Shown: piece after piece, positions 4,124 through 17,086 of the stretch
Numbering within the stretch: position 1 is the stretch's first letter
Layout of the letters: each line of letters opens with the position of its first letter
Origin: Pseudomonas aeruginosa PAO1
GTDB taxonomy: Bacteria > Pseudomonadota > Gammaproteobacteria > Pseudomonadales > Pseudomonadaceae
DNA: 64,000 nucleotides
NCBI RefSeq assembly: GCF_000006765.1
Contig: NC_002516.2
Reading direction: 5' to 3' (one strand)
Position numbers and translations under genes: made by a program
The notes under the pieces: generated by a model
Database searches by the model: none
Told to the model about the DNA's origin: nothing
Seen by the model: only the letters and a program-made list of their open reading frames with translations

Positions 4124-5356
4124 ATGAACGATATCGTCCGTCGCGATCCACGCGCCGAATGGATCGCCCGCAACCGCCTGCATCCGCTGCATGCGGCCAT
4201 GCAGTCCGCCCAAGGCGGCGAGGTGCGCTGGATGGGCCCCCACGGCGTGATCCGCAAGAACCCGCACGCCGTCGGCTTCCTCGGCCCCAACGGCATCCGC
4301 CGCATCGATCGCTCCGGCGGCCAGCAGGGCAGCGGCGCGCGCCGCGCCAGCGTAGCGCAGGAAGCGCAGTTGCCGCTGCATGTGGTCGAGCAACCGGCAT
4401 TCCTCGTCGCGGTGGTCCCGGACATGGTCGGCGGCCGTCTCTCCAGCCACGACAAGGACCTCCTCGGACTGGCCCGCAAGCTCGCCGGCAACGACGGCGC
4501 GGTGCTCGCCGTGGTGTTCGGCGAACACAAGGAAAGCGCCTTCGACAGCGCCGGCGTCGACCGCCTGCTGCACCTCTCCGGCGGCGAGTACGACGGCTAC
4601 GCGCCCGAGCAGCGAATACTCGCCCTGCGCAACCTGGAGAACCAGCTCGCCCCGCGCCACTGGCTGTTCCCGGACAGTCGCAACGGCGGCGGCGAACTGG
4701 GCCGGCGCCTGGCCGCCGCGCTCGGCGAGCGGCCGGCCGGTCGCGTCTGGCAGGTCGAGGACGGCCGCTGCATCGGCCGCGCCGGCGCCGGCCGCGAGGA
4801 CATCCAGCGCGCCCTGCCGCGCCTGCTGCTGGCCGCGGCGGAATGCGCCGAGCCGGTCAGCGAGACCCGCCATGAGGTTCGCGAACTGCACATGGCCGAG
4901 CAGGTGGCGCGCAACCTGCCACGCATCGAGGACCTCGGCCCGGTGGCCGTGGACCCGGCGCGGATTCCCATGGCCGAGGCCGAATTCATTCTCTCCGGCG
5001 GCAACGGCGTGCAGGACTGGACGCTGTTCCACCAGGCCGCCGCCGTCCTCGGCGCCACCGAGGGCGCCTCGCGGGTGGCGGTGGACGACGGGCACATGCC
5101 GCGCAACCGCCAGGTCGGCGCCACCGGTACCTGGGTCACCGCGCGGGTCTACCTGGCGGTGGGCATCTCCGGGGCGATCCAGCACCTGCAGGGCATAGGC
5201 GCCTGCGACAAGGTGGTGGCGGTGAACCGCGACGCCGGCTGCGACATGATCAAGCGCGCCGATCTCTCGGTGATCGGCGACTCGACGGAAATCCTCCGCG
5301 CGCTGATCCGCCTGGCCGAGGCACACCGCAACGGCGCCGCCCGCGATGCGGCCTGA
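4124..5356 (+). CDS. Electron transfer flavoprotein alpha subunit (with N-terminal extension)
   Basis: C-terminal FAD domain motifs GASRVAVD, RQVGATG, YLAVGISGAIQHLQG, VAVNRD. Confidence 0.9.
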   Translation: MNDIVRRDPRAEWIARNRLHPLHAAMQSAQGGEVRWMGPHGVIRKNPHAVGFLGPNGIRRIDRSGGQQGSGARRASVAQEAQLPLHVVEQPAFLVAVVPDMVGGRLSSHDKDLLGLARKLAGNDGAVLAVVFGEHKESAFDSAGVDRLLHLSGGEYDGYAPEQRILALRNLENQLAPRHWLFPDSRNGGGELGRRLAAALGERPAGRVWQVEDGRCIGRAGAGREDIQRALPRLLLAAAECAEPVSETRHEVRELHMAEQVARNLPRIEDLGPVAVDPARIPMAEAEFILSGGNGVQDWTLFHQAAAVLGATEGASRVAVDDGHMPRNRQVGATGTWVTARVYLAVGISGAIQHLQGIGACDKVVAVNRDAGCDMIKRADLSVIGDSTEILRALIRLAEAHRNGAARDAA

Positions 5357-5391
5357 ACCCGCTTCCACGTACCTTTCATCGGTATCGAACC

Positions 5392-6165
5392 ATGACTGAG
5401 CTGAACATCGTCGCGCTGGTCTCCATCGGCGCCCATCCCGCCTCCGGACGCCCGCGCCGTGCCGAACAGGACGCCCGCGCGGTGGAACTCGGCCTGTGTC
5501 TGAGCGGCCCACGCCTACAGGTGCTGCACGCCGGCGACCCGCACGCCGAGGCGCTGCGCGGCTATCTCGGCATGGGCCTGGAACGCTTGTCCGTGCTGGA
5601 ACAGCCGGCCGGCGCCGACGCCCTGCCCGCACTGGCCGAGCACCTGCGCGACTCCCGCGCGCAACTGGTGCTCACCGGCAGCCAGGCGGAAACCGGGGAA
5701 GGCTCCGGGATGCTGCCCTTCCTCCTCGCCGAGCGCCTGGGCTGGCCACTGGTGGTCGGCCTGGCCGAGGTCGAGAAGGTCGAAGACGGCAGCGCTCAGG
5801 TCCTCCAGGCTCTGCCTCGCGGCCAGCGACGCCGACTGCGGGTACGCCTGCCGTTCGTCGCCAGCGTCGACAATGCCGCGCCGGTGGCCCGGCAGAGCGC
5901 CTTCGGCCCGGCTAGGCGTGGCGAGATCGAGGCCCATGAGGTGGAGGTGGTCGACGACCCGCTGCTCGCCGAAGACAGCCTGCAACCGGCCCGGCCGCGA
6001 CCGAAGCGGCTCAAGGTAATCAAGGCGAAGACCGGCGCCGAGCGAATGAAAGCCGCCACCGCCAAGGCCTCCGGCGGTACCGGGCAGGTACTCAAGGATC
6101 TTTCGGCGGAAGCCGGCGCCGAAGCCATCTTCAAGCTCCTGCGCGAGGAAGGCGTGATCCGCTGA
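5392..6165 (+). CDS. Electron transfer flavoprotein beta subunit-like protein
   Basis: LVLTGSQA..GEGSGMLP..LAERLGWP motif; follows the ETF alpha gene. Confidence 0.85.
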   Translation: MTELNIVALVSIGAHPASGRPRRAEQDARAVELGLCLSGPRLQVLHAGDPHAEALRGYLGMGLERLSVLEQPAGADALPALAEHLRDSRAQLVLTGSQAETGEGSGMLPFLLAERLGWPLVVGLAEVEKVEDGSAQVLQALPRGQRRRLRVRLPFVASVDNAAPVARQSAFGPARRGEIEAHEVEVVDDPLLAEDSLQPARPRPKRLKVIKAKTGAERMKAATAKASGGTGQVLKDLSAEAGAEAIFKLLREEGVIR

Positions 6166-7104: not shown

Positions 7105-7509
7105 ATGAACAGACACCTGAACCTCTCGGGCGTTGCGCTCGCGCTCGCCCTGATCTCGGGCTGCGGCCCCTCCGTCCGCTACCAGTACGTGATGCCGCCG
7201 AGCGAAGCGGGACGCACCTGCGTCGCCCAGTGCCGCACGCAACAGAGCCAGTGCGAAAGCCTCGCGCGCCTGGAATGGCAGAACGAAAACCGCCTGCGCG
7301 AAGCGGAACGGCGCAGCTACCACTATTGCAGCCAGGGCAAGAGCAAGAAGCAGGCGCGCAAGGAATGCCTGGCGCCAGGCTATTCCTCCTCGTTCGGCTA
7401 CAACGGCTTCGGCGGCTCCGGCAACTTCAACTGCAGTTCCGACTACGACCGCTGCTTCACCGACATCTGCGGCGGCACCATCCGCCGCATCGTCGAGCAA
7501 CCTCAATGA
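7105..7509 (+). CDS. Cys-rich lipoprotein, unknown function
   Basis: Signal peptide with lipobox LISG-C; 8 further cysteines. Confidence 0.75.
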   Translation: MNRHLNLSGVALALALISGCGPSVRYQYVMPPSEAGRTCVAQCRTQQSQCESLARLEWQNENRLREAERRSYHYCSQGKSKKQARKECLAPGYSSSFGYNGFGGSGNFNCSSDYDRCFTDICGGTIRRIVEQPQ

Positions 7510-8549: not shown

Positions 8550-9110
8550 TCAGGCCTTCAGGGTCGAAGTCTTGCGCAAGCGCAGCGCGAGCATGACCAG
8601 CAACACGCCGAAGAACACCGCGTAGGCGCCGATCACCCAGACCACCGCCAGCGCCCCGGCGCCGGGGTTGGCGATCATCAGCACGCCGAACAGCACCGAG
8701 ATGGCACCAGAGAGGATCATCCACCATTCGTTCTGGATCGACTTGCGCAGGCGGATCGCCGCGACGATCTGGAAGATGCCCATCGCCAGTGCCCAGCCGG
8801 CGATGATCAGGAGCAGGCCGATGGCGGTCAGTTGCGGCCAGAAGAACGCAACCAGGCCGGCCGCCACGCCGATCACCCCGACCAGCGCCAGCGGCCAGTT
8901 GAACTGCCCATCGCTGCGCATGTTGAACGCGGCGATCAGGGCGAACGCTCCGTCCACCAGCGCGTAGGCACCCCAGAACAGCACCAGCACGGTCAGCGCC
9001 AGGGCCGGCGAGAGCAGGGTCAGGACGCCGAACACCAGCGCCGCCACGCCGCGCAGGGCCACCAGTTTCCAGTGCTTGCCCAGTTCGGCCCACAGGGGAT
9101 TGTTTTCCAC
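8550..9110 (-). CDS. HdeD-family (DUF308) acid-resistance membrane protein
   Basis: 'WKLVALRGVAALVFGVL..WP.LT...L...FWGAYALVDG' pattern, about 6 TM helices. Confidence 0.85.
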   Translation of the reverse strand: MENNPLWAELGKHWKLVALRGVAALVFGVLTLLSPALALTVLVLFWGAYALVDGAFALIAAFNMRSDGQFNWPLALVGVIGVAAGLVAFFWPQLTAIGLLLIIAGWALAMGIFQIVAAIRLRKSIQNEWWMILSGAISVLFGVLMIANPGAGALAVVWVIGAYAVFFGVLLVMLALRLRKTSTLKA

Positions 9111-11013: not shown

Positions 11014-11098
11014 TGGCAGGTAAATGAGCGGCCACGGCGATGCGCACAATCCGCCCCATCAGGCCATCGTTCGGCCCCGTGCGCACGGAGAGATCATC

Positions 11099-12199
11099 AT
11101 GTCGAGCAACTTCCTCAATCCGGTCACCACCCAGACCTGGGCCAACGGCCGGCACCTCGTGCGCTGCGTCAAGGTCATCCAGGAAACCTGGGACGTGCGC
11201 ACCTTCTGCTTCATGGCCGACCAGCCGATCCTGTTCTTCTTCAAGCCGGGCCAGTTCGTCACCCTGGAGCTGGAGATCGACGGCGAGCCGGTGATGCGCT
11301 CCTACACCATCTCCAGCTCGCCCTCGGTGCCCTACAGCTTCTCCATCACCATCAAGCGGGTGCCGGGCGGGCGGGTTTCCAACTGGCTGCACGACAACCT
11401 CAAGGAAGGCCAGGAGCTACCGGTGCACGGTCCGGTCGGCCTGTTCAACGCCATCGACTTCCCGGCCGACAAGGTGCTGTTCCTCTCCGGCGGGGTCGGC
11501 ATCACCCCGGTAATGTCCATGGCGCGCTGGTTCTTCGACACCAACGCCAACGTCGACATGGTCTTCGTCCACAGCGCCCGTTCGCCGAAGGACATCATCT
11601 ACCACCGCGAGCTGGAGCACATGGCCTCGCGGATCGACAACTTCAGCCTGCACATCATCTGCGAGCGCCACGGCCTCGGCGAAGCCTGGGCCGGCTACCG
11701 TGGCTACCTGAACCTGCGCATGCTGGAACTGATCGCCCCGGACTTCCTCGAGCGGGAAATCTTCTGCTGCGGCCCGACGCCCTATATGAGCGCGGTGAAG
11801 CACCTGCTGCAGGGCCACGGCTACGACATGAGCCGCTACCACGAGGAAGCCTTCGGGCCGACTCCGCCGGAGGTCCGCGCCGACGTCAGGGAACTGGCCG
11901 CGGAAGCCGCCGAGGCGCCGGAGGTACCGGTCGCCGACCAGCACCAGGTGGAATTCACCGCCACCGGCAAGAGCATCCGCGTCAGCCCCGGGGAAACCGT
12001 GCACGCCGCCGCCGCCAAGCTCGGCCTGCACATTCCGAAGGCCTGCGGGATGGGCATCTGCGGCACCTGCAAGGTAATGAAGACCGCCGGCGAGGTGGAG
12101 ATGGAGCACAACGGCGGGATCACCGACGAGGATGTCGCCGAAGGCTACATCCTCTCCTGCTGCAGCGTGCCCAAGGGCGACGTGGTCATCGACTACTGA
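11099..12199 (+). CDS. gbcB: Glycine betaine monooxygenase reductase (FAD/NAD-binding + 2Fe-2S ferredoxin)
   Basis: RSYTISS, SGGVGITP, CGP and C-terminal CGMGICGTC..C motifs; start set at ATG 11099 after SD GGAGAG. Confidence 0.93.
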   Translation: MSSNFLNPVTTQTWANGRHLVRCVKVIQETWDVRTFCFMADQPILFFFKPGQFVTLELEIDGEPVMRSYTISSSPSVPYSFSITIKRVPGGRVSNWLHDNLKEGQELPVHGPVGLFNAIDFPADKVLFLSGGVGITPVMSMARWFFDTNANVDMVFVHSARSPKDIIYHRELEHMASRIDNFSLHIICERHGLGEAWAGYRGYLNLRMLELIAPDFLEREIFCCGPTPYMSAVKHLLQGHGYDMSRYHEEAFGPTPPEVRADVRELAAEAAEAPEVPVADQHQVEFTATGKSIRVSPGETVHAAAAKLGLHIPKACGMGICGTCKVMKTAGEVEMEHNGGITDEDVAEGYILSCCSVPKGDVVIDY

Positions 12200-14634
12200 G
12201 GGCGCGAGGGAAACGCCAGGCGCTCCCAGTAGCGCCGCCGCGGCAGTTCCTCGGCCGGCAGCCAGCGTCCGGCGCAGGCCTGCAGCGGCTCGGCGGGAGC
12301 CTTCAGCAGCGAGTCCAGGGCCAGCACGTAGCGCCCCGTCCCCGCGCAGCGGAAGCACAGGTCGTCGTCGAAGCTGTCGAAGCACGGGTACTCGCCGAGG
12401 TCGTCGCGGTAGCGACGCAACGTCCGCTCTTGCACGTCGAGCAGCAGCAGGCGCCACTGGTCCCGCTCCAGCTCGCTTTCCTCGTAGCGCTGGACGTGCC
12501 GGGTCAGCGCCAGGTAGCGACCGTCCGCCGACCAGATCATTGGCGCCGCCAGGTTGCCCAAGCCGATGCCCGACGCGGTCAGCAGGTAGCCGTCGCGGCT
12601 GAACCCGGCGCGCACGTCCTCGTCGCGGTGCATGCCCTCGTAGTGGAAACCGAAGCCCCAGGCGGCGTCCTTCGCGCCCACTGACGGCAAGACGAAGTCG
12701 CCGTCGCTCCAGGGCCGCGGCGGTGCGTCCAGCCAGCGCGACGCGGGGCACAGCCGCCAGGCCGTGCCATCGAACGCCACCCGCGCCTGCTCGTAGTAAT
12801 GCCGCCAGTCGTCGTGGAAGCGGCCGAATGCGTGCCAGGCGCCGGGCTCGGGCAAGCCTTCGTCGAAGCGGCGCAACAAGCCGGGGTCGCCTTCGCCCGG
12901 CCCGCCCGGCGGCTGGTAGGCGTTGCGGCCGAGCAGGTGGAGCAAATGCACCTGGCCATCGATGAAACCTTGCAGGTGTAGATCGGCCAGCGGCTCGGCG
13001 AGCCACTCCAGGCGCCGCTCCCGGCTATCGAGTATGGCCAGGCGCTGCGGCAGGGTCGGCGCCTCGGCGAAGGCCACCACGGCCAGGTAGCGACCGCAAT
13101 CGGACACGCGGTGGTCGAGCGTCCACTCGCCATCCAGGCGCCAGTCGCCCAGGCGCAAGGCATAGGCGCCGCGCTCCGCCTCCTGATCGTCGCGCAACCA
13201 CTCCCAGACGGCCCGGCTGCCATCGGCCAGCGGTGCGCTCTGCAACAGGCATCCCGGCCTGCCGGCCGCGCCATCCAGGGGCAGCAACAGGTCCAGGCGC
13301 GGCATGTCGGCCTCGCGCCAGCGCGGCCGGTCGTCCGCATCGCGAGCGTGCAGAAGGTAGAGGCTGGAATGGCTGTACGAACCCAGCGTGCCGTAGCGTT
13401 CGTAGGTCAGGCAGGGTTGCGCCAGGTCCAGGCCGAAACGCAGCCAGCCATCCTCCAGCCCGAGCAGTTCGGGTCCACCGGCATGGGGCTCGGCGGGCAA
13501 CGCCGACCACGGCGCGCCCAGCGCACGCAGGCCGCCGTCCTCTCGCCAAAGCCAGTAGGTATCCTGCCCCAGGGGCTCGCCTGCTGCCTGCAGCGCCAGC
13601 GCCCGGCCGTCATCGTTCCAAGCCAATGGCGGCGCTTCACGGGACAGGTAGAGGCCGCTGGCCTCGCCGTTTATCCACAGCTCGCCGCGGTTGGCGCGCA
13701 GCGGCGCGAAAGGATCGTCCAGGGCCAGCAGGCTGTCCGGCAGCCAGGGGCGGATTTCCAGCGCGGGCCCGCCAAGCGGGGACGGTAGCGGTTGCGCGCG
13801 CAGATCCCCGCTCCAGCGCTGCCATTCGCTTTCGGGCAGCCAGAGGTCACCGATGGCAACGAAGGCCTCGGCCTCGCTGCCGGCCTTGAGCGCCTGCAGC
13901 TCGAGGCGCTGCGGTGCGTTGGACGTCAGCGGGCTGTGCCGGCCGATCACCTCGCGCTCGGTGACGCTGTCCAGCTCCCAGAAGTTGTCCACGGCACAGC
14001 GGTAAAGCAACCGCTCCTGCCGGTCGAAGATCGCCAGGCCCCACGCGCCTCGGCTCGGTATCGGCGAAACGAAGTGGCGGCCATCGCTGGAAAAGCGTGC
14101 CGAAGGATTGCAGTCGGGGATGAAACAGCCGTCGGGCATCAGGTAGTGGCATACCAGCGGGCCGCCCATGGCGATCTCGCCGCCGTCGAACAGGCGGATC
14201 GGCTCGCCCTCGGGGGTTCGCTCGGGCGCTTCGCCGCCCCAGGCGCTACCTCCCGCCGGCAGCGGTACGTCCAGCGCCTGCGGAGCCTGGCGCTCCAGGC
14301 GCAGGCCACGCTCGAAACGGATCTGCAGCAGCACGCCGCCGATCACCGCCAGCAAGCCACCGCCCAGTCCCAGCCAGAAGCCCGGCAGTGCCTGGCCCAG
14401 GGCGATGCCGCCACCCAGAACCCAGAAGAACAGCGCCTGTTGCAGGCGATACGGCACCTTGCCGCGCCAACGATCCATGGCCCACTCGGCGCCCAGCAGC
14501 AGCGCCCAACCCAGCGCTACCAGCGGCAACGGCAGGAGGACGCCAAGGGCCACCAGCACGGCGATCCAGGCGATCTCGCCGAGGCCTTCGAGCAACAAGC
14601 GGCCGAGCGGCTTGTCTGACATCCGATCATCCAT
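12193..14634 (-). CDS. Large hypothetical membrane-anchored protein (PA5412-like); start uncertain (14622/14634/14706)
   Basis: Long ORF; N-terminal TM helices then repeated 'S.(D/C)GR(H/Y)' beta-propeller-like motifs. Confidence 0.75.
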   Translation of the reverse strand: MDDRMSDKPLGRLLLEGLGEIAWIAVLVALGVLLPLPLVALGWALLLGAEWAMDRWRGKVPYRLQQALFFWVLGGGIALGQALPGFWLGLGGGLLAVIGGVLLQIRFERGLRLERQAPQALDVPLPAGGSAWGGEAPERTPEGEPIRLFDGGEIAMGGPLVCHYLMPDGCFIPDCNPSARFSSDGRHFVSPIPSRGAWGLAIFDRQERLLYRCAVDNFWELDSVTEREVIGRHSPLTSNAPQRLELQALKAGSEAEAFVAIGDLWLPESEWQRWSGDLRAQPLPSPLGGPALEIRPWLPDSLLALDDPFAPLRANRGELWINGEASGLYLSREAPPLAWNDDGRALALQAAGEPLGQDTYWLWREDGGLRALGAPWSALPAEPHAGGPELLGLEDGWLRFGLDLAQPCLTYERYGTLGSYSHSSLYLLHARDADDRPRWREADMPRLDLLLPLDGAAGRPGCLLQSAPLADGSRAVWEWLRDDQEAERGAYALRLGDWRLDGEWTLDHRVSDCGRYLAVVAFAEAPTLPQRLAILDSRERRLEWLAEPLADLHLQGFIDGQVHLLHLLGRNAYQPPGGPGEGDPGLLRRFDEGLPEPGAWHAFGRFHDDWRHYYEQARVAFDGTAWRLCPASRWLDAPPRPWSDGDFVLPSVGAKDAAWGFGFHYEGMHRDEDVRAGFSRDGYLLTASGIGLGNLAAPMIWSADGRYLALTRHVQRYEESELERDQWRLLLLDVQERTLRRYRDDLGEYPCFDSFDDDLCFRCAGTGRYVLALDSLLKAPAEPLQACAGRWLPAEELPRRRYWERLAFPSRPQ

Positions 14635-14753
14635 GATCCATGATCCATCCCACTTTCCTGGCAAAAGCCAAGGGTAATCAAGGCTCCGGCCAACCACCAG
14701 AGCCATCGCGCAGCTCTGTCCTTCTCATACTTGAAAACACCAGGGCGCCAAGG

Positions 14754-15993
14754 TTGTCCACATTCGGACTGGAATTCCATACAGGTGTCTTCTCGCCACC
14801 TTGGCGTTCTCGACGATCGATTGTAAGCATTTGAAGTTAAAGGTAAAAACGACAACTTCAAGTTGGTTTCAGGCTCCAGGAACAAAGCCCTTGCCGATCT
14901 CTGGAGAGGCCTTTCGAGGGTAGGTTGATCACAGACTTATCCACAGACCGTGTGGTCCATGAGACCCCCTGATACCCCGCGGGTTAACGATCGCTATACC
15001 GACGATGTCCACTCGCCCTGGCGCATGGGCTCCGCCAGCACATCCGGCTACCCCTCCGGGTAAATCGCGCTTCTCCTCCGCTCGCGCTAGGCGCAGTCTC
15101 CTGCTCATTTAACGATCAATCCGCCAGAGACCCCGCCGTCCGGCCGCCCCAAGCGTGAGCGAACAATTTTTCCACAGGGCTTTACACTCCCCTTGGGGAA
15201 AACCAGAAAAATATTCACAGGATGAAGAAAAAACCTGGCCTATTCTGGCTCTTCATCCCTTCCCGCCCGGCCTGACCATTTATTGACCAACTCCATGCAG
15301 GCCTTACCTTATAAGGCTTACAGAACTATCCATACAGGTTGTCCACAAGGCTTTCCAGGCCTTTTGTGAGCAACCCTGCGTTTGTGCACATGCCCCCTAA
15401 AGCAAGCCGGCAGCCTGTTGACAGAAAATCCGCTCAATTCTTGACCAATAGCCTGGAAGGCGCGGGCCCTCTGGCTCCCAGCATTCTATAAACAGGCTCT
15501 GCACACTGACCTCAACAGGAATTGGGGGAAATTCCCGGCGGCGGCCGCAACCGCTGTTCCAGCGCCATCGGAGCGGGAGAATTTTGTCTTTTTCCTCAAG
15601 CCGTTACGTCCGCGCAGGGGGTTTGCGGCATTTGCCCCCACTTCGCTCCTTGCTTTTCTATCCACAGGCCTGTCTGGGTCCCGCAGGGACAATGCCCGTC
15701 ACCGTTTCGTCAGCGCTTTTCACCTGAACCTTCATCGTCCTTTCACAAACGGCTGTTTTCGCTCAAAAACCGACCAACCTCCGAAGAGCCCGGCAGGGCG
15801 CCGCGCGGAAGCGACTGCGAACACGTTATTCACATTCGACTCCACAGTGTTTGTGGATTGGCCAGGTTCTCCTGGCATGGGAGTGGAACCGCGTGGATAA
15901 AGGCTTTCAACACCCCCGGCGGAGATAGGGAGGGTGTTGCCGGGGGCACTTTTGCATAGCTCCCGAACAGTTAGCCCACAGAGTTATCCACAG
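14754..15993. promoter_or_regulatory. DnaA-box cluster
   Basis: 10 matches to TTWTNCACA with <=1 mismatch: 14754, 14937, 15168, 15211, 15339, 15382, 15658, 15826, 15892 (minus), 15984; no credible ORF in the region. Confidence 0.7.
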
Positions 15994-16045
15994 GAGATGA
16001 GGAAAGAGCGGCCGCCCCGGTTCATAGAGGCGGCCGAGAGCGGAC

Positions 16046-17086
16046 TCAGGCGCCCATCACCAGGCGGATGTCCCGCGCCAGTTCGCGGACCCGCTCGATA
16101 TCGGTATCCCAGGAACACATGAAACGCGCGCCACCTTCACCGATGAAGGTGTAGAAGCGCCAGCCGCGCGCGCGCAAGGCTTCGATCGCCGGCTCGGAAA
16201 GCTGCAGGAACACGCCGTTGGCTTCTACCGGGAACATCAGGCTGACGCCGGGAACGTCGGCCACCAGTTCGGCCAACAGCCGCGCGCAGCGGTTGGCGTG
16301 ATCGGCGTAGCGCAGCCAAGCATCGTCCTGCAGTACGCCGACCCAGGGCGCGGCGAGGAAGCGCATCTTCGAGGCCAGTTGGCCGGCCTGCTTGCAGCGG
16401 TAGTCGAAGTCCTCGGCCAGGTCGCGGTTGAAGAACAGGATCGCCTCGCCCACCGCCATGCCGTTCTTGGTGCCGCCGAAGCAGAGCACGTCGACCCCGG
16501 CCTTCCAGCTCAGCTCCGCCGGCGAGCAGCCGAGGAAGGCGCAGGCGTTGGAGAAGCGCGCGCCGTCCATGTGCAGGTGCAGGCCGAGCTCCTTGCAGGT
16601 GGCGCTGATCGCCTTCAGCTCGTCCGGGCGGTACACCGTGCCGACCTCGGTGGCCTGGGTGAGAGTCACCACGCGCGGCTTCGGATAGTGGATATCCTGG
16701 CGCTTGAGAGCGATGTCGCGGATCGACGCCGGGGTCAGCTTGCCGACCTCGGTCTGCGCCAGCAGCAGCTTGGAGCCATTGGAGAAGAACTCCGGCGCGC
16801 CGCACTCGTCGGTCTCGACGTGGGCGGTCTCCGAGCAGATCACGCTGTGGTAGCTCTGGCACAGCGCAGCCAGGGCCAGGGAGTTGGCGGCGGTGCCGTT
16901 GAAGGCGAAGAACACTTCGCAATCGGTCTCGAACAACTGGCGGAAGTAGTCCGAAGCACGCGCGGTCCACTGGTCGTCGCCATAGGCGCGTTCGTGGCCG
17001 CGGTTGGCTTCGGCCATCGCCGCCCAGGCTTCGGGGCAGATGCCGGAATAGTTGTCGCTGGCGAACTGTTGGGTGTGATCGGTCAT
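16046..17086 (-). CDS. ltaA: Low-specificity L-threonine aldolase
   Basis: FASDNYSG, GGTKNG (PLP Lys), HMDGARF motifs; start set at MTDHTQQ (346 aa). Confidence 0.95.
   Translation of the reverse strand: MTDHTQQFASDNYSGICPEAWAAMAEANRGHERAYGDDQWTARASDYFRQLFETDCEVFFAFNGTAANSLALAALCQSYHSVICSETAHVETDECGAPEFFSNGSKLLLAQTEVGKLTPASIRDIALKRQDIHYPKPRVVTLTQATEVGTVYRPDELKAISATCKELGLHLHMDGARFSNACAFLGCSPAELSWKAGVDVLCFGGTKNGMAVGEAILFFNRDLAEDFDYRCKQAGQLASKMRFLAAPWVGVLQDDAWLRYADHANRCARLLAELVADVPGVSLMFPVEANGVFLQLSEPAIEALRARGWRFYTFIGEGGARFMCSWDTDIERVRELARDIRLVMGA

Follow-up and report, generated by a model that had tools for sequence, protein, structure and literature searches.

A tandem array of composite DnaA-box units between PA5412 and ltaA of Pseudomonas aeruginosa, a candidate replication-control locus

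The 64-kb stretch of Pseudomonas aeruginosa DNA analysed here (the window) contains, between the start of PA5412 and the stop of the threonine aldolase gene ltaA (PA5413), a non-coding gap densely occupied by boxes for the initiator protein DnaA. The boxes belong to a degenerate tandem array, with a spacing of ~160 bp (period 158-171 bp), of one composite unit. We lean towards reading the gap as a chromosomal, origin-proximal, non-origin DnaA-binding array, which would act like datA of Escherichia coli or the DnaA-box clusters of Bacillus subtilis, and we regard it as a strong candidate replication-control locus. A first-pass annotation of the region had suggested a datA/DARS-like locus or a cryptic origin; it missed the main feature, namely that the boxes sit in a structured composite unit common to many Pseudomonas species.

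The box cluster and its repeat unit

When the region 14754-15992 was scanned with the consensus TTWTNCACA, 13 boxes with at most one mismatch were found (4 perfect and 9 with one mismatch), 11 on the + strand and 2 on the - strand. The perfect boxes lie at 14937, 15168, 15826 and 15984, all on the + strand and exactly where the first-pass annotation had placed them; its tally of 10 boxes, 9 on one strand, captured the cluster and the strand bias and was too low in number. In 1000 dinucleotide-preserving shuffles of the array region itself, the expectation was 0.08 perfect boxes and 1.74 boxes with at most one mismatch, and the observed counts were reached in 0 of the 1000, which rules out chance or a composition artefact. 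Boxes in the gap show the extended context typical of high-affinity sites (TTATCCACAG). There are eight in-phase positions ~160 bp apart, seven of which carry a box with at most one mismatch, three of these perfect. The fourth perfect box, at 14937, is located further out, 231 bp before the next box, and five additional one-mismatch boxes, three on the + strand and two on the - strand, fall between the in-phase positions.

The consensus unit (aactGATCATTTTTTGATCAAacgCCTGCAGGCCtcgatttacgtGGCCTGCAGcggttcGCGAACAccTTATCCACAGaagcgccCACAGagaTTGGGGGCAAC) is composed of a 15-bp AT-rich palindrome (at -65), a 6-bp inverted repeat CAGGCC/GGCCTG, a strong DnaA box (at 0) flanked 5' by GAACA, and a weaker inverted box (at +26). 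In all four intact units of the window, the palindrome, the box and the inverted partner occupy positions -65, 0 and +26. The weaker boxes at 15365 and 15852 that had been picked out at first pass are real, and they are inverted partners exactly 26 bp after the main boxes of their units. The features of the array are as follows.

14754-14762, +: DnaA box TTGTCCACA, one mismatch; solo, in phase
14937-14945, +: perfect DnaA box TTATCCACA; solo, with a very weak inverted CCACA core 5 bp on
15099-15203, +: repeat unit 1 (nhmmer E 2e-9)
15103-15117: palindrome of unit 1, GCTCATTTAACGATC, one mismatch to the Fis consensus
15168-15176, +: perfect box of unit 1, TTTTCCACA
15194-15202, -: inverted partner of unit 1, TTTTCCCCA
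15211-15219, +: extra box ATATTCACA, one mismatch
15270-15374, +: repeat unit 2 (nhmmer E 1.7e-12)
15274-15288: palindrome of unit 2, GACCATTTATTGACC, perfect Fis consensus
15339-15347: box of unit 2, TTGTCCACA
15365-15373: inverted partner of unit 2
15382-15390, +: extra box TTGTGCACA, one mismatch
15422-15534, +: repeat unit 3, the best-scoring (nhmmer E 3.9e-13)
15432-15446: palindrome of unit 3
15497-15505: decayed box of unit 3, CTCTGCACA, two mismatches
15523-15531: inverted partner of unit 3
15590-15598, +: box TTTTCCTCA, one mismatch
15658-15666, +: box CTATCCACA, one mismatch; in phase, 161 bp past the unit 3 box and 168 bp before the unit 4 box, other modules decayed
15753-15857, +: repeat unit 4 (nhmmer E 1.9e-9)
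15761-15775: palindrome of unit 4
15826-15834: perfect box of unit 4, TTATTCACA, with a 5' flank (GCGAACACG) common to fluorescens-group units
15852-15860: inverted partner of unit 4, extending 3 bp past the profile match
15892-15900, -: box TTATCCACG, one mismatch, on the opposite strand
15950-15958, +: box TTTTGCATA, one mismatch
15984-15992, +: perfect box TTATCCACA; solo, in phase, 158 bp past the unit 4 box

Within the window, two profiles place the unit in the gap only. A first profile, constructed from 38 fluorescens-group units only, matched the 64-kb window only inside the gap and on the + strand, one match being without any DnaA box. A second profile (nhmmer), constructed from 71 units taken from loci other than the window, gave four gap-free matches of ~105 bp in the window, with E values from 2e-9 to 3.9e-13, and no match better than E 0.1 in the 64 kb outside the gap. 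When the whole gap was compared by blastn with the 80 orthologous loci described below, nothing was returned at E <=1e-3, and relaxed scoring produced weak patches only; homology to the related arrays became visible only with the repeat-unit profile. A sigma-70 promoter in each unit was also considered and rejected, by inspection only, since the spacing between the TTGATC-like and TATAAG-like hexamers (19-21 nt) is too long.

Across the arrays of 22 loci (22.9 kb), the 15-bp Fis consensus GNNYAWWWWWTRNNC has 19 perfect matches in the palindromes and elsewhere, compared with 0.48 in shuffles, and 70 matches with one mismatch, compared with 9.7. In 15 of 18 cases, from both species groups and including the window pair 15274 and 15339, the palindrome starts 65-66 bp before the next box, and the centre-to-centre distance of ~62 bp corresponds to about six helical turns. 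Fis is named here as the best sequence-based guess for a palindrome-binding protein, as a lead rather than a finding, because its consensus is permissive.

Perfect boxes are also more frequent than expected elsewhere in the window (9 in the whole 64 kb, compared with 0.6 expected). Five lie outside the gap, at 13671(+), 28331(-), 35002(-), 37143(+) and 47253(-), where ~0.5 would be expected in the 64 kb minus the gap, and four of them read TTATCCACAG. The box at 13671 is within PA5412, one is intergenic just downstream of aspA, and one is within a MocR-like regulator gene; other modules of the repeat unit were found at none of the five. This excess fits the excess reported on the left chromosome arm (PMC13438810). 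The gap itself shows no enrichment of GATC.

Conservation of the array and its genomic setting

The comparison sample consisted of 80 ltaA loci, one genome per species. DnaA-box clusters recur in the gbc-ltaA-glyA neighbourhood of aeruginosa- and fluorescens-group species. The array is located directly downstream of ltaA in aeruginosa-group loci (L001, L022, L037, L050, L057, L058 and L061), between glyA and ltaA in L004 and L023, and, in a dozen fluorescens-group species, in a 0.8-1 kb gap just past gbcA, between the convergent genes gbcA and etfB. Across 12 fluorescens-group species the main boxes do not vary at all, and neither do parts of the flanks. In two pairs of sister species the box columns are 91-99% identical, compared with 68-73% in the rest of the gap, and ltaA is 92-94% identical. 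In P. aeruginosa itself, boxes with at most one mismatch survive at the in-phase positions 15658 and 15984 (161, 168 and 158 bp from their neighbours), although the other modules are gone. These values suggest that the boxes are under purifying selection. The first-pass annotation had named a lack of box conservation across Pseudomonas among the grounds for abandoning its proposal; the boxes are in fact conserved.

Some further features of the related arrays were observed. The fluorescens-group array (L011 9990-10700 and 11 other loci, alignment A1) is a ~620-bp element of four orthologous units, situated between the 3' ends of gbcA and the electron transfer flavoprotein (ETF) beta-subunit gene, and some of its sequence outside the boxes, for example CGTGACTTAT and CTGTGGAAAAC, is invariant as well. 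Palindromes like repetitive extragenic palindromic (REP) sequences, for example GGAGCGAGCTTGCTCGCGAAC and its complement, flank the arrays (L022 ~2590-2745, L037 ~7230-7320, L011 9975-10010 and 10690-10780). In Pseudomonas sp. BN417 (L001), boxes occupy four intergenic gaps within 10 kb around ltaA/gbcAB (1577-1787, 5073-5680, 8648-8721 and 10010), three of which match the unit profile too; this multiple occupancy implies that the unit family may spread locally.

Tandem arrays of this kind, their presence in several gaps of BN417 and a choice of gap that differs between lineages are also what a neutral or selfish, satellite-like repeat would produce, with the DnaA box being incidental. The conservation of the non-box modules, which one window unit keeps after losing its box, points the same way. 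However, the boxes are far better conserved than their surroundings in the sister species, and they persist alone and in phase after the rest of the unit has decayed. Moreover, across ~2 Mb examined (the window, the 80 ltaA loci and 80 dnaA loci), the family was met only in the ltaA neighbourhood, and it is absent from the plasmid and phage collections searched. A selfish repeat is accordingly an improbable explanation.

The immediate surroundings of the array are as follows.

11024-12199, +: gbcB, the flanking gene beyond PA5412
12193-14622, -: PA5412, 809 aa, without family match; downstream neighbour of the array
14623-16045: non-coding gap of 1.42 kb from the PA5412 start to the ltaA stop, with the whole array inside; delimited from translations, GC content at third codon positions (GC3), a GC dip and no Rfam match
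14816-14855: AT-richest 40 bp of the gap, 70% AT, overlapping a promoter-like site
16009-16036, -: GC-rich hairpin directly past the ltaA stop, likely the ltaA terminator; boundary of the array
16046-17086, -: ltaA (PA5413), low-specificity threonine aldolase, with its 3' end toward the array

Past ltaA, the order is glyA and then soxB. The GC content of the gap is 51-58%, compared with 64-73% in the flanks (the array region itself has 56%), and the open reading frames of the gap have a GC3 of 0.43-0.62, compared with 0.87-0.92 for the flanking genes, which rules out a hidden gene or pseudogene. On all of these points the first-pass annotation was right: GC content is lower than in the flanks, an AT-rich tract is present (70% over 40 bp at 14816), no open reading frame has normal codon usage, and the neighbours, here identified as gbcB, PA5412 and ltaA, are not dnaA, rpmH or gidA.

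PA5412 has a GC3 of 0.87 and, by eye, a hydrophobic N-terminus; its product has no Pfam or NCBIfam match. A homologue was not found by tblastn in any of the 80 related Pseudomonas loci, so PA5412 was dropped as a synteny anchor, and in close relatives the equivalent place is taken by a paralogue of elongation factor G (EF-G). PA5412 thus looks like a species-specific gene beside the array. Tandem ATGGATC repeats (ATGGATCATGGATCATGGATGATCGGATG) lie on its coding strand at 14615-14650, directly upstream of the chosen start; they supply several in-frame ATGs, which makes the true start codon uncertain. Two promoter-like sites were found in 14500-16200, both toward the PA5412 end of the gap, and one of them (14847 to 14820, - strand) would serve PA5412. 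The AT-rich tract that it overlaps is one of only three 40-mers with 70% AT in the whole 64 kb.

This setting raises the question of whether DnaA acts here as a transcription factor, with the array tuning PA5412, or an unannotated RNA of the gap, in step with the replication cycle. The array does lie upstream of PA5412, and of the EF-G paralogue in close relatives; the promoter-like site on the - strand is suitably placed, and DnaA regulates gidAB-parAB in P. aeruginosa (PMC13438810). On the other hand, 13 boxes over 1.2 kb go far beyond the needs of a promoter, and the two promoter-like sites are both at the PA5412 end. This explanation is further weakened because PA5412 is missing from every related locus that keeps the array, the neighbouring gene varies by lineage, and in the fluorescens group the array is flanked by the 3' ends of two convergent genes, gbcA and etfB, a place that calls for no promoter. 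For an RNA of the gap, Rfam gave no match in the window gap, and the covariation term of RNAalifold (+0.74) gives no support for RNA structure, so that a known RNA family or a structured RNA was rejected; the sole Rfam match in L011 ('mir-2238') is spurious and falls on a REP-like palindrome. Taken together, regulation of a neighbouring transcript is unlikely to be the role of the array.

Chromosomal position, origins and mode of action

The position of the gap can be derived from a published cassette insertion. The cassette primers (S1 Table, PMC5521831) match the window exactly at 14756, 15494, 15514 and 16175, and the insertion point given there, PAO1 position 6,091,513, is window position 15513/15514; the window corresponds to PAO1-like coordinates 6,076,001-6,140,000 in standard orientation. 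The GC skew of the + strand is negative, consistent with the left replichore. With a PAO1 chromosome length that we take to be 6,264,404 bp, the gap is ~173 kb from dnaA. Lying between PA5412 and ltaA at this distance, it is therefore neither oriCI nor oriCII. The first-pass annotation had raised identity with oriCII (oriC2), the second autonomously replicating sequence (ARS) of P. aeruginosa, which is located upstream of gidA beside oriCI (PMC13438810; bioRxiv 10.1101/2025.08.05.668638); location and the lack of profile similarity to dnaA/gidA-region loci rule this out.

For a comparison with origins, 80 dnaA loci from metagenomes (894 kb) were used. In the two most Pseudomonas-like of these (L081 and L082), which have the oriC1/oriC2 layout, the boxes are 2-60 bp apart and lie beside an element of 78-83% AT. 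The main boxes of the gap are 158-231 bp apart, in place of the close spacing of an oriC; its AT tract (40 bp at 14816) reaches 70% and is ~60-80 bp away from the two boxes on either side, at 14754 and 14937, and its neighbours are PA5412 and ltaA rather than dnaA, rpmH or gidA. Repeated 13-mers or a DnaA-trio run beside a strong box were not seen by eye, without a formal scan, and the unit profile found no match in the 894 kb of dnaA/oriC loci.

The idea of a cryptic or back-up origin, that is, a third ARS, had also been put forward at first pass. The many boxes would suit it, as would the AT-rich tract at 14816-14855 between the boxes at 14754 and 14937, and two functional origin sequences are already known from P. 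aeruginosa (bioRxiv 10.1101/2025.08.05.668638). However, the boxes are ~160 bp apart instead of being tightly packed next to a strong unwinding element, the AT maximum is modest, no 13-mers or trio run were seen by eye, and a profile match to oriC1/oriC2 is absent. The AT tract also falls on what is likely the PA5412 promoter. In addition, the papers cited here report only two ARS fragments of P. aeruginosa, both from the dnaA-gidA region (as summarised in bioRxiv 10.1101/2025.08.05.668638). On architecture, a cryptic origin is the least likely of the rival explanations, and we consider it very improbable.

An integrated plasmid or phage origin was likewise rejected, as the gap had no blastn match in PLSDB or the phage collection. 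A scan of viral contigs for the box-plus-flank motif returned one unrelated contig with 41% GC. This IMG/VR contig (L161) carries at ~1030-1200 a tight DnaA-box cluster (TTATCCACA and TTATCAACA, with GCGAACAAG flanks) beside a long AT-only tract, which looks like a DnaA-dependent phage or plasmid origin.

Based on the results presented above, a mode of action for a non-origin DnaA-binding array may be proposed. The array would derive from tandem copies of the rigid composite unit. DnaA would occupy the strong boxes through most of the cell cycle, and a DNA-bending nucleoid protein, for which Fis is the best guess, would bind the palindrome between successive boxes; the resulting fold would bring the DnaA molecules of adjacent boxes into contact. 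As the locus would be copied once forks have travelled ~173 kb after initiation, this sink for DnaA would double early in the cycle. Overall, there would be less free or active DnaA and a restraint on re-initiation, through titration and possibly through hydrolysis of DnaA-ATP as at E. coli datA. Titration, stimulation of ATP hydrolysis (datA-like) and nucleotide exchange (DARS-like) would look alike at the level of sequence.

The same geometry might serve the nucleoid instead, with arrays of DnaA and a bending protein folding or anchoring the origin-proximal domain and exerting no direct effect on initiation. The rigid palindrome-box spacing (65 bp start to start) and the 160-bp period do suggest an ordered nucleoprotein array in which the DNA is wrapped. 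In the window, as in 14/14 fluorescens-group loci, TTATCCACA lies on the C-rich strand, a weak hint of a fixed orientation to replication; however, the 13-kb skews are noisy and five other loci do not fit. DnaA has no known precedent in such a role in proteobacteria, and nothing in the present data separates it from titration. We give a purely organising function only a slight chance.

Several observations weigh against a DnaA-binding array with a role in replication control. The best-preserved P. aeruginosa unit, unit 3, keeps its other modules while its box has decayed (CTCTGCACA), and the P. aeruginosa array as a whole is more decayed than the fluorescens-group arrays. Representatives of the koreensis, syringae and stutzeri groups have no array within 6 kb of ltaA, so that the array is either not universal or elsewhere in them; in the putida group, the 6-kb flanks end short of the gbcA-distal gap, and the origin proximity of the arrays was established for the PAO1 position alone. 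The hydrolysis activity of datA requires IHF. The scan for IHF and Fis sites that the first-pass annotation had recommended was run with consensus sequences: the palindromes fit the Fis consensus, which is loose and easily fitted by an AT-rich palindrome, and the IHF consensus WATCAANNNNTTR has 0 matches at 0 or 1 mismatch in 14700-16045, with a single 0-mismatch match in the 22 arrays, although the same scan recovered the known datA site. Finally, a multi-kb cassette at 15513/15514, in the middle of the array, has been used as a neutral site, and no growth defect is mentioned in the accessible part of that source (PMC5521831); this insertion leaves both halves of the array in place. One laboratory integrates arabinose-inducible and lacZ reporter cassettes at this site, which splits unit 3 between its decayed box and its inverted partner.

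Comparison with known DnaA-box loci

Control of DnaA by non-origin loci is understood mainly in E. coli (datA, DARS1 and DARS2), and box clusters act in B. subtilis too; a Streptomyces DnaA-box cluster is a further non-origin example. To our knowledge, datA and the DARS elements of E. coli have not been traced beyond that species and its close relatives. Non-origin DnaA-box clusters are thus a known class, and the gap, with a significant and conserved cluster of consensus boxes outside oriC, has the sequence features of it; what is unusual is the rigid, repeated composite architecture conserved across a genus. In the literature searched, which left most subscription journals outside its coverage so that a prior mention is possible, no description was found of a DnaA-box cluster at PA5412-PA5413 or near gbcA, or of the unit motifs, and no chromatin immunoprecipitation (ChIP) data for Pseudomonas DnaA were found in the searchable literature. 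A 2026 paper predicts 129 boxes in PAO1161 with an excess on the left arm, and in the part of it that is accessible this cluster is not discussed (PMC13438810).

It is possible, and we advance it tentatively, that the gap represents an undescribed Pseudomonas replication-control locus: a family of composite units that spans the genus, each with a bending-protein site, a DnaA box and an inverted box in rigid geometry, in origin-proximal gaps, which would be the functional counterpart of datA/DARS2 and would have evolved independently of the enterobacterial elements. Such a locus would bear on the timing of initiation beyond Hda in Pseudomonas, which includes an opportunistic pathogen and major soil- and plant-associated species. 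It offers a precise, short target that can be deleted in laboratory strains, and the three separable modules of the unit make the question directly testable. The mid-array 'neutral' integration site in use in P. aeruginosa (PMC5521831) may not be neutral for replication control.

Among known loci, P. aeruginosa oriC2 comes from the same species and is likewise a dense DnaA-box cluster; the chromosome replicates without it, and DnaA binds it in vitro (PMC13438810). However, it is located in the gidA promoter region beside oriCI, ~173 kb away from the gap; in the Pseudomonas-like locus L082 the oriC2 boxes crowd together next to a strong AT-rich element, and the unit profile does not match oriC2. 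The B. subtilis DnaA-box clusters (DBCs) near oriC, whose joint deletion leads to early initiation (PMC3245932), have an operational definition, near but outside oriC, that the gap would fit if DnaA binds it. They are from another phylum, have no sequence relation to the gap and have not been reported to consist of composite units in tandem with a site for a bending protein.

Like the gap, DARS1 and DARS2 are DnaA-box elements away from the origin in which some boxes face in opposite directions. DARS2 relies on sites for both Fis and IHF, and the DARS core consists of three boxes, with 5 bp between boxes I and II, which are inverted (PMC6868365). The gap differs: each of its four intact units has the inverted partner 17 bp after the box (26 bp start to start) and no third adjacent box; the sole inverted pair 5 bp apart (14937/14951) has a partner with 3 mismatches, and the gap lacks an IHF consensus.

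At the E. coli locus datA, a cluster of DnaA boxes titrates DnaA and, together with IHF, stimulates the hydrolysis of DnaA-ATP. Both datA and the gap are ~1 kb of non-coding, origin-proximal DNA outside oriC with several consensus boxes. A datA-like locus would be expected to have at least 4-5 boxes in such a length; the gap has 13 with at most one mismatch in 1.24 kb, and the same scan applied to datA found 6 in ~1 kb (2 perfect and 4 with one mismatch), together with the known IHF site. The differences are equally clear. The gap has no sequence similarity to datA (on L162, the datA locus, the unit profile scores no better than E 0.17); its intervening site fits the Fis consensus, and an IHF consensus is absent; it has about twice as many boxes, in a tandem repeat with an inverted partner at +26 for each strong box; and its flanking genes are not those of datA, which lies in the glyVXY-queG gap. 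What stands of the first-pass proposal of a datA/DARS-like locus is therefore a dense, non-random, non-coding cluster outside oriC. Judged by sequence or core geometry, without datA similarity, an IHF consensus or a three-box core, the gap belongs to neither the datA nor the DARS family.

There is nevertheless a likeness of layout. In datA of MG1655, 162 bp separate the consensus boxes at 2745 and 2907 of the L162 locus, the first of which is 65 bp from the IHF site (2810); in the Pseudomonas unit, the period is 158-171 bp and the palindrome-box distance is 65 bp. This likeness is a resemblance and not a homology, and the shared distances may reflect coincidence or a common design constraint. 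If confirmed, the rigid 65-bp/26-bp geometry and its echo in datA would suggest a convergent design rule for DnaA-regulating DNA.

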